Below are positions 18,566-25,595 of a stretch of 64,000 nucleotides of DNA, piece by piece. Positions within the stretch are counted from its first letter, which is position 1. Each line of letters starts with the position of its first letter. The DNA is from Bacillus subtilis subsp. subtilis str. 168 (GTDB taxonomy: Bacteria > Bacillota > Bacilli > Bacillales > Bacillaceae): positions 1,922,001-1,986,000 of the forward strand of contig NC_000964.3 in assembly GCF_000009045.1 (NCBI RefSeq), in the 5' to 3' direction. The notes under the pieces were generated by a model, which made no database searches, was not told the origin of the DNA, and saw only the letters and a program-made list of their open reading frames with translations. Made by a program: the position numbers and the translations under genes.

Positions 18566-18624
18566 GAGTTCGTGCTCATAAGAAGTGTAGAGCCAAAATG
18601 ATGCGAAGGAGGAAAAGATCAGAT

Positions 18625-20124
18625 ATGAAACGGTCAATCTCTATTTTTATTACGTGTTTATTGATTACGTTATTGACAATGGGCGGCATGATAGCTTCGC
18701 CGGCATCAGCAGCAGGGACAAAAACGCCAGTAGCCAAGAATGGCCAGCTTAGCATAAAAGGTACACAGCTCGTTAACCGAGACGGTAAAGCGGTACAGCT
18801 GAAGGGGATCAGTTCACACGGATTGCAATGGTATGGAGAATATGTCAATAAAGACAGCTTAAAATGGCTGAGAGATGATTGGGGTATCACCGTTTTCCGT
18901 GCAGCGATGTATACGGCAGATGGCGGTTATATTGACAACCCGTCCGTGAAAAATAAAGTAAAAGAAGCGGTTGAAGCGGCAAAAGAGCTTGGGATATATG
19001 TCATCATTGACTGGCATATCTTAAATGACGGTAATCCAAACCAAAATAAAGAGAAGGCAAAAGAATTCTTCAAGGAAATGTCAAGCCTTTACGGAAACAC
19101 GCCAAACGTCATTTATGAAATTGCAAACGAACCAAACGGTGATGTGAACTGGAAGCGTGATATTAAACCATATGCGGAAGAAGTGATTTCAGTTATCCGC
19201 AAAAATGATCCAGACAACATCATCATTGTCGGAACCGGTACATGGAGCCAGGATGTGAATGATGCTGCCGATGACCAGCTAAAAGATGCAAACGTTATGT
19301 ACGCACTTCATTTTTATGCCGGCACACACGGCCAATTTTTACGGGATAAAGCAAACTATGCACTCAGCAAAGGAGCACCTATTTTTGTGACAGAGTGGGG
19401 AACAAGCGACGCGTCTGGCAATGGCGGTGTATTCCTTGATCAATCGAGGGAATGGCTGAAATATCTCGACAGCAAGACCATTAGCTGGGTGAACTGGAAT
19501 CTTTCTGATAAGCAGGAATCATCCTCAGCTTTAAAGCCGGGGGCATCTAAAACAGGCGGCTGGCGGTTGTCAGATTTATCTGCTTCAGGAACATTCGTTA
19601 GAGAAAACATTCTCGGCACCAAAGATTCGACGAAGGACATTCCTGAAACGCCATCAAAAGATAAACCCACACAGGAAAATGGTATTTCTGTACAGTACAG
19701 AGCAGGGGATGGGAGTATGAACAGCAACCAAATCCGTCCGCAGCTTCAAATAAAAAATAACGGCAATACCACGGTTGATTTAAAAGATGTCACTGCCCGT
19801 TACTGGTATAAAGCGAAAAACAAAGGCCAAAACTTTGACTGTGACTACGCGCAGATTGGATGCGGCAATGTGACACACAAGTTTGTGACGTTGCATAAAC
19901 CAAAGCAAGGTGCAGATACCTATCTGGAACTTGGATTTAAAAACGGAACGTTGGCACCGGGAGCAAGCACAGGGAATATTCAGCTCCGTCTTCACAATGA
20001 TGACTGGAGCAATTATGCACAAAGCGGCGATTATTCCTTTTTCAAATCAAATACGTTTAAAACAACGAAAAAAATCACATTATATGATCAAGGAAAACTG
20101 ATTTGGGGAACAGAACCAAATTAG
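18625..20124 (+). CDS. eglS: Endo-1,4-beta-glucanase (GH5 + CBM3) EglS/BglC, 499 aa
   Basis: Signal peptide MKRSISIF; GH5 IYEIANEP and FVTEWG catalytic glutamates; C-terminal CBM3; SD AAGGAGG before ATG 18625. Confidence 0.98.
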
Positions 20125-20479: not shown

Positions 20480-20581
<102 letters not shown>

Positions 20582-20643
20582 AGAATAAAGCTTTGCTGTT
20601 TTTATGTACATCCTTTCTTCTTCCTGTAATTCAGCAACAAAAT

Positions 20644-20673
20644 AAAAAAGCGATTTCCCAATCGGAAAATCGC
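20644..20673 (-). terminator. xynD-xynC terminator
   Basis: GCGATTT..AAAATCGC stem followed on the minus strand by TTTTTTATTTT. Confidence 0.75.
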
Positions 20674-20713
20674 CAATTCAGACACTCTATTATTTATGTG
20701 TGTCTTTGTGCTC

Positions 20714-21982
20714 TTAACGATTTACAACAAATGTTGTCACGCTTTGAGCTGGAAGATGAGCCCAAAAATGATTGCCTGATACAGTGAGATTCGTTCCAGG
20801 TTGTAGATTGCTGCTGCTGCTCGTGATCCATCTAGATACGTTTGAAGCAGATCCATTCTGCAAAACAAAGTTTTGGTTGACTCCTGTGTTGCTTTTATTG
20901 ATGGCAACAATAACGACCTTGTTGTCACCTTTATAGGCTGACACGTAAACGTTCGCATTAGGGTTTTTCGTTGCATCAATCCTTACATAGCCGGGACGCA
21001 CAAACTTTGAGAAATGAGCCATATTGTAGCCGCGTTTGCTGATCGTACCATCTTCTTTCATAGGTCCATATGATCTTCGGATGTACCACCATACATAAGC
21101 TTGAAAGTCCCCCTCTACCATCGCATTGTGAATATGCTGTGAAACATCCAATGCCTCAGGCCATCGATCCGCCGAGTTGGTATCACTGTTTGGATAGTAT
21201 ACTTCCGTCATCCAAAGGTCCTTCCCCGCTCCTTTTTGTTTGAAAAGAGGATAAGGGAATTGGCTGACCTGGGTGCCGTACAGGTGAGTTCCGAGAATAT
21301 CCATATTGGCAAGAGCCTGCGGATCGTTCAAGATCGGGTCCGACAAATTCTTCAAGTATTGAAATGACTCAGGCGCAATGACGCGGGCATTGATCGAGCC
21401 GGCGTTTTCTCTCATAAAGCGAAGTATTTCTTGCGGCGTCCACCACGTCCACTCGTGAGCGTAATCAGGCTCGTTTTGGACCGAAATCGCGTAAAGATTC
21501 ACACCATTATTCTTCATGAAGGTAACAAAATCGTTAAGATGCTGCGCGTATGCTGCGTACTTGTTGTATTTCAGCCGTTTAGCCGATGTGTCACCATTCC
21601 GATTAAAGGTCTCAACCATATCACTTGGAGGATTCCAAGGAGAAGCAAAAACGATTGCTCCGTGTTTGACCGCACTCTTTGCAGTCTCCACCTCTTTATA
21701 CCAATTATTTCGATTTTCATCTACATGAATTCTTAAGATTGAAAATCCTAACTGGTTCTGTCCATTGCCAAAAGCAGTTTCTCTTTGAGCTGCTGTAAGA
21801 TCCCCAGCCCAAGCCGGATGATTCATCCCTCCAAAACCGCGAATCACTTGTTTCTCTGCAGATACATTAACTGTTACATCACTTGCTGCCAAAACTTCAG
21901 TAGCGCCTGGCCCTAACATGACTGACAGCATAGTGAAACATACTAATAGTACACAAATTGTTTTTTTTATGCGTGGAATCAT
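20714..21982 (-). CDS. xynC: Glucuronoxylanase XynC (GH30_8)
   Basis: 422 aa, signal peptide; AISVQNEPDY and KDLWMTEV catalytic motifs. Confidence 0.97.
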   Translation of the reverse strand: MIPRIKKTICVLLVCFTMLSVMLGPGATEVLAASDVTVNVSAEKQVIRGFGGMNHPAWAGDLTAAQRETAFGNGQNQLGFSILRIHVDENRNNWYKEVETAKSAVKHGAIVFASPWNPPSDMVETFNRNGDTSAKRLKYNKYAAYAQHLNDFVTFMKNNGVNLYAISVQNEPDYAHEWTWWTPQEILRFMRENAGSINARVIAPESFQYLKNLSDPILNDPQALANMDILGTHLYGTQVSQFPYPLFKQKGAGKDLWMTEVYYPNSDTNSADRWPEALDVSQHIHNAMVEGDFQAYVWWYIRRSYGPMKEDGTISKRGYNMAHFSKFVRPGYVRIDATKNPNANVYVSAYKGDNKVVIVAINKSNTGVNQNFVLQNGSASNVSRWITSSSSNLQPGTNLTVSGNHFWAHLPAQSVTTFVVNR

Positions 21983-22112
21983 TTATTCCTCTCCTTCGTC
22001 ATGTGTCTTTTACGGTATTAAAAAATCTGCATGGCATATCCATAATGGCGGGCTGTTCCGGTGCTGGCCCGTACTTCACCCGCCTCGTTTTTAAGCGGTC
22101 CCATTACGAGTA

Positions 22113-23654
22113 CTATCTTTGCGTAAACTGCCAGTAATCAAAATTAAACAAGTTTCCTGTACCTGTTCCGGTAAATACAAAGAATACTTTGTGCACACCG
22201 GTTGCCCCGCTTACCGCAGTTTCTATTTCCCTCCACGTTTGCGCTCCGCCTGTTGAAGGCACATTCAGAGTTCCAACAAGCTTACCGTCTGCACTGTCGA
22301 GGCGCACTTCTATTTTCCCGCCTAAAGTGGATGCTACATTTGCTTTAAATGACCTGGCACCGCCCGCTCCGAAGTCTGCATTTCCTACAGCAATCCAGTC
22401 TCCATTTTGAATGCTTGTTACATGCTGATTATTTACTGGCCCGCCGGGTGCTGTGGACTTCTCTGTCAAAATGCGTCCATTCCAAGCAAACGTTTCAGCT
22501 TCTACCCGGTTATATGGGTTTAAATTGGAAATTTGTGTTACACCTGCATAATTTGCCGCTACCTCTTGAATAGATCCATCTGCATTATGCACCAGCTTAT
22601 TAATATGGGGAGAGCGGTATCCTTTGCCGGCCCCGAACAGAGCGGAACTGACAGTTTGCGCATGGTACACCACATACCACTCGTTTTTAAAATTGAAAAC
22701 AGCATGATGGTTGTTTCCGCCACCTCCGAAAAATGCACCCGGATTTTTCAGGAAGTGCCCTCTATATGTAAAGGGACCCATGGGACTTGAACTGGTCATG
22801 TAGCCGATCTCACCCGGGGGTTTATCGGCCGGGTGCGTGCCGCCGAAATTGATGCAATAGGAGTAATAATATGTTCCGTTATACTTGTGCAATCCCGAAT
22901 CTTCAAACATGAAAGGCGCATCAATTGTAGATGCACTTCCAACAACACTCGTCATATCAGGCCCCAATTTTATGACTCTAGCCGTTTTAGGATTGGCCCA
23001 TTGTCCCTGCGTTGGATTTGAAACGCCAGGAACGCCTCCGCCGGCATACAGGTAACCGGTTCCGTCGTCATCTACAAATACTGCCGGATCAAAAAGCCAT
23101 ACAACACCAGACATTCCTGGCGTACTTGGCGTTACGAGCGGTTTTCCGATTGGGTCGGTCCATGGACCAATCGGGCTGTCTGCGGTGAGAACCCCGATAC
23201 CTCCGCCGCTGTTTGCGAAATAAAGGAAGAATTTATCCTTGCCATTAATTTTTTTAACTGCGATTGACGGTGCCCATGACGCACCTGCCCATTTTGCAAT
23301 TCCACGGCCTCCATTAGCTCCATTGGCACCTGCTACCGGAATGGCTCCGTGGTCTGTCCAGTTCACCATATCCGCTGAAGATATGACGAATACTCTATTC
23401 AAATTGGCAAATGAATTATCTTTAATTGTTCCGTTGCTATTATATTCATAGTCATCACTTGACATATAGATGTAGACTCTTCCGTTATAGGTCAGCGCAA
23501 CCGGATCCGCTCCCAAATGATGGTCGATAAGCGGATTTGAATTCCCTATATGTTTTGCAATTGTAGTACTAGTGGCAGCATACGCAGACTTCCCAGATAA
23601 GCAGCTCAATAATAAAACTAGAATCCATAAACATACGCTACACTTTTTCCTCAT
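22113..23654 (-). CDS. xynD: Arabinoxylan arabinofuranohydrolase XynD (GH43 + CBM6)
   Basis: ADPVAL, SWAPS, LFDPAVFVDDDG, MFED; C-terminal CBM6 (RVEAET, NFDYWQF); start ATG 23654 or GTG 23657. Confidence 0.97.
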   Translation of the reverse strand: MRKKCSVCLWILVLLLSCLSGKSAYAATSTTIAKHIGNSNPLIDHHLGADPVALTYNGRVYIYMSSDDYEYNSNGTIKDNSFANLNRVFVISSADMVNWTDHGAIPVAGANGANGGRGIAKWAGASWAPSIAVKKINGKDKFFLYFANSGGGIGVLTADSPIGPWTDPIGKPLVTPSTPGMSGVVWLFDPAVFVDDDGTGYLYAGGGVPGVSNPTQGQWANPKTARVIKLGPDMTSVVGSASTIDAPFMFEDSGLHKYNGTYYYSYCINFGGTHPADKPPGEIGYMTSSSPMGPFTYRGHFLKNPGAFFGGGGNNHHAVFNFKNEWYVVYHAQTVSSALFGAGKGYRSPHINKLVHNADGSIQEVAANYAGVTQISNLNPYNRVEAETFAWNGRILTEKSTAPGGPVNNQHVTSIQNGDWIAVGNADFGAGGARSFKANVASTLGGKIEVRLDSADGKLVGTLNVPSTGGAQTWREIETAVSGATGVHKVFFVFTGTGTGNLFNFDYWQFTQR

Positions 23655-23741
23655 CACTTCACATCCTCCTTTTTCCTTAAAATGGGGGATTTTCTTTTGG
23701 AATTTGATAACAACAGGTCACGAAGATTGCACGCATAAAGT

Positions 23742-23910
23742 AGCCGGAAGCTGTTTAGCAATGTTCCCAGTTGTTCTGAAAGCTCATCTTCATGTGTCTC
23801 CATTCTCTCTTTTCTTCGAGGAGATCGCACCACTCCTTCAAAATTGTTCAAAAAAACTTCCCCATTCCTAGCGACCATTGTCCAGAAAATAAAAAGACAG
23901 GATTGTTCAT
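23742..23910 (-). pseudogene. Eroded remnant of an iturin-family malonyl-CoA transacylase gene (ituD/fenF/bmyD type)
   Basis: MNNPVFLFSGQWSLGMGKFF* (23910-23848) resembles the recalled N-terminus MNNLAFLFPGQGSQFVGMGK; KERMETHEDELSEQ (from 23812) and AKQLPA (23759-23742) resemble the recalled C-terminus KERMERHENELSEQELEH...CEAKQLPAW. Confidence 0.75.
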
Positions 23911-23973
23911 GGCCTCCCACTAATCACATTGAACGGAGATTACATCATTATCCAAGATATCCCTTTATCTAAC

Positions 23974-24002
23974 ATCCTACATCATTAAAAAAATTGTGTA
24001 TA
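23974..24002 (-). promoter_or_regulatory. Putative relic lipopeptide-operon promoter now pointing at xynD-xynC
   Basis: TATACA-17-TAGGAT on the minus strand, the hexamer pair I recall for the itu/bmy promoter. Confidence 0.55.
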
Positions 24003-24177
24003 GAAACTTTTGGAGGAGTTAGTGTTCGATTCTACAAAGGAACTGGATACATTTATTCATTGATAAGATGGGGCTAACACTCCGTTTATATTTGTATGTT
24101 TTCAGACACAAAAAACAGCCGTTCAATGCGGCTGTTTTTTTCAAGAGTATAAGACTATTGAGCGGTATACCCGCTTT

Positions 24178-24209
24178 TTCATGTTTTGTTCATATTTTAT
24201 TAATTGTTT
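24178..24209 (+). promoter_or_regulatory. Tandem 11-bp-phased direct repeats, OmpR-family response regulator site (YclJ-type) upstream of yngA
   Basis: TTCATGTTTT-g-TTCATATTTT-a-TTAATTGTTT; overlaps the -35 of TTGTTT-16-TATAGT (24204-24231). Confidence 0.65.
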
Positions 24210-24290
24210 ATTCAACACTGTCCGCTATAGTAATCCATATCAACAAATATGACTGCCACTCGCATCTTTTATGAAGGGAGGTTCGTTACG

Positions 24291-24695
24291 CTGAAAGAAA
24301 AAATAAAGACATTAGGCCGTTTTTGCACCGTAGGCGTCGGCAATACGCTGATAGATTTTGGTGTCTTCTTTCTTCTTACCGCTTGTCATGTCTCTTATCT
24401 GCCGGCGCAGATCTGCTCCTATACTGCAGGTATCGTCAACAGCTATGTGTGGAACCGGAATTGGACGTTTTGTGTGAAACGTAAGGCTGACGGGAAAGAG
24501 ATCGTGCGTTTTCTCATGATTAATATTGCCGCGTCAGGGATCACCTTTTTGCTGCTTTATTTGTTTCAAAATTGCGGCTGCTCGCTTTTGGTGAGTAAGC
24601 TCGCCGCCACTATCGGCGGAATGATGATGAATTTTATCGGAAACCGAATCTGGGTATTTGGAGATTCGCTGAAAAACATACAGGATCAGGAGTGA
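24291..24695 (+). CDS. yngA: GtrA-family undecaprenyl-phosphate-sugar flippase YngA
   Basis: RFCTVGVGNTLIDF...SYVWNRNWTF GtrA pattern; ATG at 24249 has no SD, whereas SD AAGGGAGG sits 9 nt before in-frame CTG 24291 (start uncertain). Confidence 0.85.
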   Translation: MKEKIKTLGRFCTVGVGNTLIDFGVFFLLTACHVSYLPAQICSYTAGIVNSYVWNRNWTFCVKRKADGKEIVRFLMINIAASGITFLLLYLFQNCGCSLLVSKLAATIGGMMMNFIGNRIWVFGDSLKNIQDQE

Positions 24696-24701
24696 AGATG
24701 A

Positions 24702-25595
24702 ATGAGAAAAAAAGTGAGAAAAGCGGTTATACCCGCAGCGGGTTTAGGAACGAGATTTCTGCCGGCGACAAAGGCGCAGCCTAAAGAAATGCTTCCAATC
24801 GTCGACAAACCAGCAATCCAATATATTGTAGAAGAGGCCGCAGAGTCAGGAATTGAAGATATACTGATTATTACAGGGAGAAACAAACGCTCGATTGAAG
24901 ATCATTTTGATCGGTCGGCGGAATTGGAATTCAATCTCCGGGAAAAAGGCAAGACGGAGACACTTAAGGAAATGCAGCAGATTGCCGATTTGGCCAACAT
25001 TCATTACATCCGCCAGAAAGAACCGCTCGGATTAGGCCATGCGGTGCTGTGTGCGGAGCATTTTATCGGAGATGAGCCTTTTGCTGTTCTCTTAGGTGAT
25101 GATATTATGGTGTCTGAAACACCGGCTCTTCGGCAATTAATGGATGTATATGACGTTTATGGCACAGAGGTTGTCGGTGTACAGTCAGTTCTCCCTGAGG
25201 ATGTCAGCAAATATGGTATTATAAATACATCAGGGTCTCAAGGGCATGTATATGAAGTGAACGATTTAGTGGAAAAGCCTTCTCCTGAAGAAGCACCTTC
25301 GGAAATCGCAGTAATGGGACGTTATGTGCTGAATTCTTCGATCTTCTCCGTTTTGAAGACAATTGGCAGAGGCGCGGGCAACGAAATTCAGCTGACAGAT
25401 GCGCTTCGTGAGGTTTGCCGTAAGGAGCCGATCCATGCCCGGCTGCTGGAAGGAAATCGATATGACATTGGCGATAAGCTGGGCTGTTTTAAAGCGAGCA
25501 CCGAAATCGGCTTAATGCGTCCCGAAATGAGATCTCAGCTTTTGGCCTATTTAGAAGATGTGATCAAACGGGAAACGAAAGAAATGCTGCGGTAA
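24702..25595 (+). CDS. yngB: UTP-glucose-1-phosphate uridylyltransferase (GalU/GtaB paralog) YngB
   Basis: KAVIPAAGLGTRFLPATKAQPKEMLP, QKEPLGLGHAV, VEKP. Confidence 0.97.
   Translation: MRKKVRKAVIPAAGLGTRFLPATKAQPKEMLPIVDKPAIQYIVEEAAESGIEDILIITGRNKRSIEDHFDRSAELEFNLREKGKTETLKEMQQIADLANIHYIRQKEPLGLGHAVLCAEHFIGDEPFAVLLGDDIMVSETPALRQLMDVYDVYGTEVVGVQSVLPEDVSKYGIINTSGSQGHVYEVNDLVEKPSPEEAPSEIAVMGRYVLNSSIFSVLKTIGRGAGNEIQLTDALREVCRKEPIHARLLEGNRYDIGDKLGCFKASTEIGLMRPEMRSQLLAYLEDVIKRETKEMLR

Follow-up and report, generated by a model that had tools for sequence, protein, structure and literature searches.

A relic iturin-family promoter upstream of xynD and xynC in Bacillus subtilis 168 and its possible capture through loss of an antibiotic operon

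Background

The closest described relatives of the element considered here are the promoters of the iturin A, bacillomycin D and mycosubtilin operons (Pitu, Pbmy and Pmyc). The bmy operon has one sigma-A promoter, aided by DegQ, DegU and ComA, with DegU binding at two upstream sites, and the mycosubtilin operon is repressed by AbrB (reviewed in PMC3039948); DegU binds the itu promoter in vitro (PMC10632791), a DegU consensus has been given as GNCATTTA (PMC2245950), and the published start of the iturin-family promoter is reported to have been confirmed (PMC4634765). The element itself lies in a stretch of 64,000 nucleotides (nt) of Bacillus subtilis subsp. subtilis str. 168 (NC_000964.3, positions 1,922,001 to 1,986,000), called the window below and numbered from its first letter. 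There, an orthologue of these promoters stands upstream of xynD and xynC. All features described are on the minus strand unless stated otherwise.

The window element resembles Pitu, Pbmy and Pmyc in orthologous sequence, in its distance to an ituD/bmyD/fenF-type start codon, in the hexamers TATACA and TAnnnT and in the 79 conserved nt upstream of them. It differs in having glycoside hydrolase genes rather than a synthetase operon downstream, a spacer of 17 and not 18 nt, no internal TATAAT, and a terminator in place of the DNA beyond about -114. The fusion of a gene to a foreign promoter by deletion is a well-known kind of event, and the locus is also comparable to the classical trp-lac read-through fusions, in which genes and a terminator have been removed and a co-directional promoter, a leader of debris and an intact gene remain. 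Unlike those, the window case is natural and ancient, occurs in several species, carries nested later deletions and bears signs of selection on the promoter, and its read-through is inferred; neither this case nor its persistence across species was found in the literature searched. A third comparison is with the AbrB regulon, the transition-state exoenzyme and antibiotic genes of B. subtilis. Both xynD and xynC are listed as AbrB-repressed (PMC4670728), and the window would differ in that the probable AbrB-controlled region was inherited from a deleted antibiotic operon and not evolved for hydrolases.

It may well be, with chances that we judge not far short of even, that a material share of the transcription of xynD, and with it of xynC, comes from the relic promoter. 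In the history that we propose, an iturin-family operon of the ituD-ituABC type would once have stood between yngA and xynD, and its promoter would have survived an ancient deletion, common to the window genome and four sister species, that took away about 36 kilobases (kb), the operon's terminator and some 60-70 nt of native sequence upstream of xynD. The promoter would thereby have been left co-directional with xynD. Sigma-A RNA polymerase would start near 23966-23970, read through a leader of about 310 nt of gene debris, including a translatable remnant of 20 codons, and continue into xynD and probably xynC, to end at a terminator at 20674-20649. A bolder version, which we regard as possible but rather doubtful, is that the relic has been taken over as the working xynD-xynC promoter and that selection has held it in five or more Bacillus species over a neutral divergence of 10-25%, its spacer being shortened from 18 to 17 nt and the native promoter deleted or decaying.

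Orthology with the promoters of intact operons

The homology search covered all 49 species genomes of the genus, the window genome being G000. Nine of them carry an intact operon (G025, G016, G022, G014, G013, G020, G002, G011 and G005), and in these nine the promoter block and the block next to xynD lie about 37 kb apart, the promoter being followed by an intact ituD-type gene of 400 codons and an ituC-type gene ending just before xynD. The window promoter block aligns base for base with the region 5' of the ituD-like genes in all nine, that is, with alignable sequence directly 5' of the start of an ituD/bmyD-type malonyl-CoA transacylase. The initial annotation had recognized the hexamers as those of the itu/bmy promoter, and by the alignment with the nine intact loci they are the orthologue of the iturin-family promoter. 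The -35-like hexamer TATACA is at 24002-23997, the 17-nt spacer at 23996-23980 and the -10-like hexamer TAGGAT at 23979-23974. The last T of TAGGAT is 64 nt from the ATG of the relic ituD (23910), and the -10 is 320 nt from the ATG of xynD (23654); both distances, like the position of the pair at 24002-23974, agree with those first given. Transcription is predicted to start at 23966-23970, 4-8 nt downstream of the -10. TAGGAT is presumably the mapped -10 of the family, with a start about 57-58 nt from the ATG, which would be 23968 here.

There is one exact copy of TATACA-17-TAGGAT in the 64-kb window, where 0.01 would be expected. The hexamers alone are no evidence of a promoter, because, by a rough sigma-A weight matrix, sites as good as this one turn up in the window at a rate of about one per 230 nt; the homology is the evidence. 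The same matrix gave no better sigma-A-like site on the minus strand between 24150 and 23640, which favours the relic as the start, and a consensus promoter scan with a cut-off of 9/12 does not list the TATACA-TAGGAT pair. TATACA is invariant in 13 aligned loci and in a second operon copy in G035. The -10 reads TAGGAT, TACGAT or TAGAAT in the intact copies and TATGGT in the second G035 copy, with positions 1, 2 and 6 (TAnnnT) unchanged in every copy examined. The spacer is 17 nt in the five genomes of what we call lineage 1 (G000, G068, G010, G065 and G028) and 18 nt in all other copies.

G035 has both a relic at xynD and, on another contig (G035:C18:654800-657200), this second, diverged and apparently intact iturin-family operon, whose promoter reads TATACA ... 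TATAAT ... TATGGT.

Upstream of the hexamers, a block from -36 to about -114 (24003-24081) is conserved in all intact operons, and homology ends at 24081. About 560 nt of ancestral DNA upstream of that point are missing in the window, so that the promoter block abuts a bidirectional terminator hairpin (24105-24140, both strands; -15.7 kcal/mol, z = -4.3), which insulates the relic promoter from upstream. The hairpin is itself a relic, the terminator of a small open reading frame (ORF); the same hairpin follows a 47-codon ORF in the intact genome G025 (L005 735-878). In the window that ORF has been deleted except for its last few codons, which remain 5' of the terminator (24105-24176) and form a second small fossil.

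Downstream of the hexamers, alignment identifies the relic 5' untranslated region (5'UTR) of ituD at 23911-23973, with the Shine-Dalgarno sequence GGGAGG (23918-23913), then the relic ituD start and an ORF of 20 codons, MNNPVFLFSGQWSLGMGKFF, ending in a stop (23848-23910), in which the GQGSQ motif of ituD has been destroyed by a 6-nt deletion. Further ituD debris, recognized by comparison with the intact 400-codon gene of G025, occupies 23743-23847: codons about 25-45 extend to about 23815, where the junction of an internal deletion of about 1 kb is reached, and 3' of that junction are about 70 nt of the ituD 3' end (HEDELSEQ...AKQLPA). In all, about 45 decayed ituD codons are retained. The junction of the deletion of about 36 kb, joining the ituD 3' end to the upstream region of xynD, is at 23739-23743 by alignment with the intact loci; lost in it were ituA, ituB, ituC, the ituC terminator and about 60-70 nt beyond. 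What remains before the gene is a native xynD-proximal block (23655-23738), partly common to relic-free genomes and containing the Shine-Dalgarno sequence AGGAGG (23670-23665). The anatomy of the locus is exactly what promoter capture needs.

History of the operon loss

Four of the lineage-1 genomes (G000, G068, G010 and G065) have in common a 6-nt and an approximately 20-nt deletion in the 5' end of ituD, and all five have in common the 17-nt spacer. Because gene-killing deletions are common to lineage-1 genomes, ituD was dead already in their common ancestor. The five differ by nested later deletions at short repeats, which have left leaders of 127-326 nt; in G028, which has the 127-nt leader, the 5'UTR runs straight into the block upstream of xynD and the remnant ORF is wholly deleted. 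G035 and G026 carry a differently built relic that retains the middle part of ituD and has an 18-nt spacer. All seven relic-bearing genomes (7/7) keep the promoter, with leaders of 127-413 nt.

The converse deletion has occurred independently in G004 (C1:1994800-1997000), where the promoter has been lost with almost all of the operon, and the last ituC codons and the terminator are kept 5' of xynD. Since G004 lost the promoter, its retention is common, not universal. In G021 (C12) xynD is 0.89 identical to that of the window at four-fold sites, as close as in a sister species; no relic is present, and the sequence upstream of the xynD-proximal block differs.

Sequence constraint after gene death

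Of particular weight is the conservation of the promoter block in species that lost the operon long ago. Variable columns were counted among G000, G068, G010 and G065, the same four genomes for every class of site, so that relatedness affects all classes equally. The promoter with the 79 nt upstream of it (24081-23974) has 17/106 variable columns (16%), compared with 30/61 (49%) in the relic 5'UTR, 17/40 (42%) in the xynD-proximal block above the Shine-Dalgarno sequence and 54/155 (35%) at the four-fold degenerate sites of xynD. The promoter block is thus less variable than the 5'UTR (Fisher p = 1e-5) and than the four-fold sites (p = 0.001), and the 5'UTR is evolving at or above the neutral rate. 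In pairwise terms, the promoter-upstream block of the window is 92-95% identical to those of G068, G010, G065 and G028; the neutral comparison to this 0.92-0.95 is a four-fold identity of 0.77-0.91 in xynD and 0.79-0.87 in yngA/yngB. A similar disparity is seen in the differently built relics of the closely related G035 and G026, which differ from each other at about 4/132 positions upstream of the start and about 11/62 in the 5'UTR (counted by eye). Gene conversion is no explanation of the conservation, because the block is single-copy in the window genome; no second copy was found in the sister genomes.

Dead DNA should not stay so conserved, and for that reason the promoter block very probably still does something; the comparison supports purifying selection on it in the species concerned. 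The constraint result therefore moves promoter capture from a guess to a reasonable hypothesis. What the block does could also be something other than starting xynD transcription. It could serve as a platform for AbrB or another regulator acting on a downstream start, or as the source of a short leader RNA or of a 20-codon peptide, a set of roles that we consider improbable. Unexpectedly, the dead ituD ORF is conserved like the promoter over its initial ~53 nt (23853-23910; 7/53 variable columns), with the 5'UTR between the two free to vary, and a purine run resembling a Shine-Dalgarno sequence is kept with the ATG in four species; the AbrB regulation on record for xynD and xynC (PMC4670728) would likewise suit such a role. 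Against a peptide, the changes in the remnant ORF are 3 non-synonymous and 2 synonymous, with no codon pattern and no sign of peptide selection, and its 3' end is different in every species, the whole ORF being absent from G028. Against a short RNA, there is no terminator to end one, and the leader has no Rfam match and folds no better than shuffled sequence (z = +1.27 for the whole leader).

Predicted read-through toward xynD and xynC

Genomes with the intact operon have a strong terminator directly 3' of the ituC stop codon. It lies about 130 nt from xynD, a distance that rises to about 300 nt in genomes with a duplicated xynD 5' end. This terminator has been deleted in the window. The initial annotation had seen no terminator between the promoter and xynD, and that statement holds up under a consensus scan, a relaxed hairpin-plus-U scan and folding, none of which gave one between 23967 and 23654; the leaders of the seven relic-bearing genomes also lack any terminator-like structure. 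A co-directional promoter with no terminator between it and xynD is, then, what is found at this locus, and from this arrangement we infer that transcripts begun at the relic would reach the gene.

Two structures within the leader were considered and set aside. A weak terminator at the only U-run (U7, 23855-23849) was rejected, its hairpin being no stabler than shuffled sequence (z = 0.11) and specific to the window genome, and a hairpin sequestering the Shine-Dalgarno sequence was rejected likewise (z = -0.68).

The coding region of xynD (22113-23654; GH43 and CBM6, Pfam E-values 9.8e-32 and 1.3e-40) is separated from that of xynC (20714-21982) by a spacer at 21983-22112. A promoter scan of this spacer on the minus strand listed no promoter-like site, and xynC is likely to be co-transcribed with xynD. 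Downstream of the relic promoter, no clear terminator is reached before the intrinsic one after xynC (20649-20674), which has an 11-bp stem followed by a T-run (-15.4 kcal/mol). The xynD-xynC spacer also contains a GC-rich hairpin (GGCGGG...CCCGCC) with no U-tail, and then a small hairpin before a run of U6.

Recorded repression by AbrB and possible activation by DegU

The regulatory part of the initial annotation, which had proposed control of the AbrB/DegU type, fared unevenly. For AbrB the literature gives experimentally supported repression: Arrieta-Ortiz et al. (2015, PMC4670728) list AbrB, in a gold standard derived from SubtiWiki, as a repressor of both xynD and xynC, and a network inferred there from two expression compendia retains AbrB->xynD and AbrB->xynC with coefficients of -0.369 and -0.232. 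AbrB repression is also what is reported for the mycosubtilin operon (PMC3039948). The gold standard further has ppsA, ppsB and ppsE, which lie a few kb away in the window, as AbrB-repressed. For DegU the case is weakened, the homology to the intact promoters ending at about -114. A sequence at about -80, within 24003-24081, TAAATGTA, is a near match to the reverse of the DegU consensus. The outcome of capture would be to place a xylan-debranching and a xylan-cleaving enzyme under transition-state control with AbrB repression, and DegU activation would be possible but weakened.

Points against an active relic promoter and the native xynD-proximal block

A number of observations weigh against the relic as a working promoter. 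Some concern its core. The hexamers agree with the sigma-A consensus at 8 of 12 positions (4/6 each) with no TG extension, so that the sigma-A pattern is present in weak form: a spacer of 17 nt and, in the -10, an A in second and a T in sixth place. Two of the five lineage-1 species have an altered -35 (TATGCA in G068, TATACG in G065). Every intact operon has an invariant TATAAT inside the 18-nt spacer, 5 nt upstream of TAGGAT (L005 1597-1602 in G025), and this reads TTTAAT in the window (23985-23990) and TTTAAT or worse across lineage 1. This invariant TATAAT may be bound by a regulator or serve as an additional -10; if it were the true -10, the relic promoter would be crippled.

Others concern its activation. 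The orthologous promoters depend on activators, and the DNA beyond about -114, where the homology stops, has been replaced in the window; the lost part may have included both of the DegU sites that have been reported for the region upstream of the bmy promoter. B. subtilis 168 presumably makes little DegQ, which would weaken activation further. The AbrB link, for its part, is non-specific, because AbrB represses many exoenzyme genes. As for RNA, the contigs assembled from four runs belonging to three studies cover the whole 5,001 nt of 20500-25500, with one or two contigs of 14-43 kb in each run; such contigs are uninformative on transcript start, strand and level, and may include DNA.

The last of these points is the xynD-proximal block. 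The part about 45-80 nt upstream of xynD is common to the relic-free genomes G004 and G021, and a promoter or operator may still be working there, next to the gene. On this evidence the relic could be silent or negligible, and xynD, with xynC, could have a promoter of its own lying no more than about 90 nt from the start codon; another cause, or a sampling effect, would then account for the conservation of the relic block. We think this rather unlikely. In its favour are the weak hexamers, the loss of the activator region beyond -114, the changed -35 of G068 and G065 and the destroyed TATAAT, and G004 and G021, which share the proximal block and its palindrome, must transcribe xynD without the relic. 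Yet neither inspection by eye nor the rough matrix gave a convincing sigma-A site in any genome's proximal block, and across 16 genomes no consistent site emerged. The block above the Shine-Dalgarno sequence evolves at the neutral rate in lineage 1 (17/40), and it is partly deleted in G035, where xynD is intact. Nor would a silent relic explain why the relic block is 2- to 3-fold more conserved than neutral sites. As to a shift of constraint on the proximal block between relic and non-relic genomes, the variable columns (10/28 against 89/166 neutral in non-relic genomes, 17/40 against 54/155 in lineage 1) go in the expected direction and are not significant. A search of full-text literature found nothing on the start site of xynD.

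The palindrome, ATGAC-N5-GTCAT, is about 60 nt upstream of xynD and may be an operator for a regulator. G022 and G013 have it in perfect form and G005 and G021 with a single mismatch; in the window (23709-23725, GTGAC ctgtt GTTAT) it is degenerate. A candidate native promoter, ATGACC-N16-TAAAAG, was dropped, as its -10 is without the key T, and as G013 and G002 lack it in copy 2 of their duplicated upstream region.

Significance of the relic promoter

Should the relic promoter indeed drive xynD and xynC, the locus would be a clean natural case of gene loss rewiring regulation, and this in the Gram-positive model that has been studied best; degradation of plant-cell-wall xylan in the laboratory strain would then follow the regulatory scheme of an operon for an antifungal antibiotic. 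That would also provide an origin for the recorded AbrB control of the two genes. Natural alleles are at hand for comparison, with leaders of 127 to 413 nt and, in G004, loss of the relic promoter instead. There is practical relevance for any use of the xynD region and for the reading of tiling-array or RNA-seq signal in the gap between xynD and yngA. Should it not drive them, what survives is simply a fossil in good condition, and it would still have to be explained why the promoter block and the initial 50 nt of a dead gene are conserved.

Other features of the locus

The assignment of xynC as GH30-like rests on weak Pfam GH30 matches and on a gene order matching the eglS-xynC-xynD-yngABC locus. 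On the far side of xynC, Pfam identifies a GH5 cellulase on the plus strand (18598-20124), and the divergent neighbours beyond the relic are yngA (GtrA-like), yngB (nucleotidyl transferase) and yngC (DedA-type membrane protein). Through the whole relic runs an ORF of 88 codons (23920-23654) that begins with GTG and ends in a TGATG overlapping the start of xynD. It was discarded as probably a chance frame: it has no Shine-Dalgarno sequence and is not conserved, having been removed by deletions in G010, G065 and G028.

The state of xynD itself varies among the genomes. The G028 copy is interrupted at codon 301 by a stop, due to a frameshift or to an assembly error. In G025, whose lipopeptide operon is intact, only the 5' end of xynD is present, and the 1.7 kb downstream contain no match to the mature enzyme. 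About 165 nt, comprising the xynD upstream block and signal-peptide codons, are tandemly duplicated in G016, G022, G013, G002 and G004 and single-copy in the window; the first copy of the duplication has decayed, and in G016 and G022 that copy has lost its start codon.

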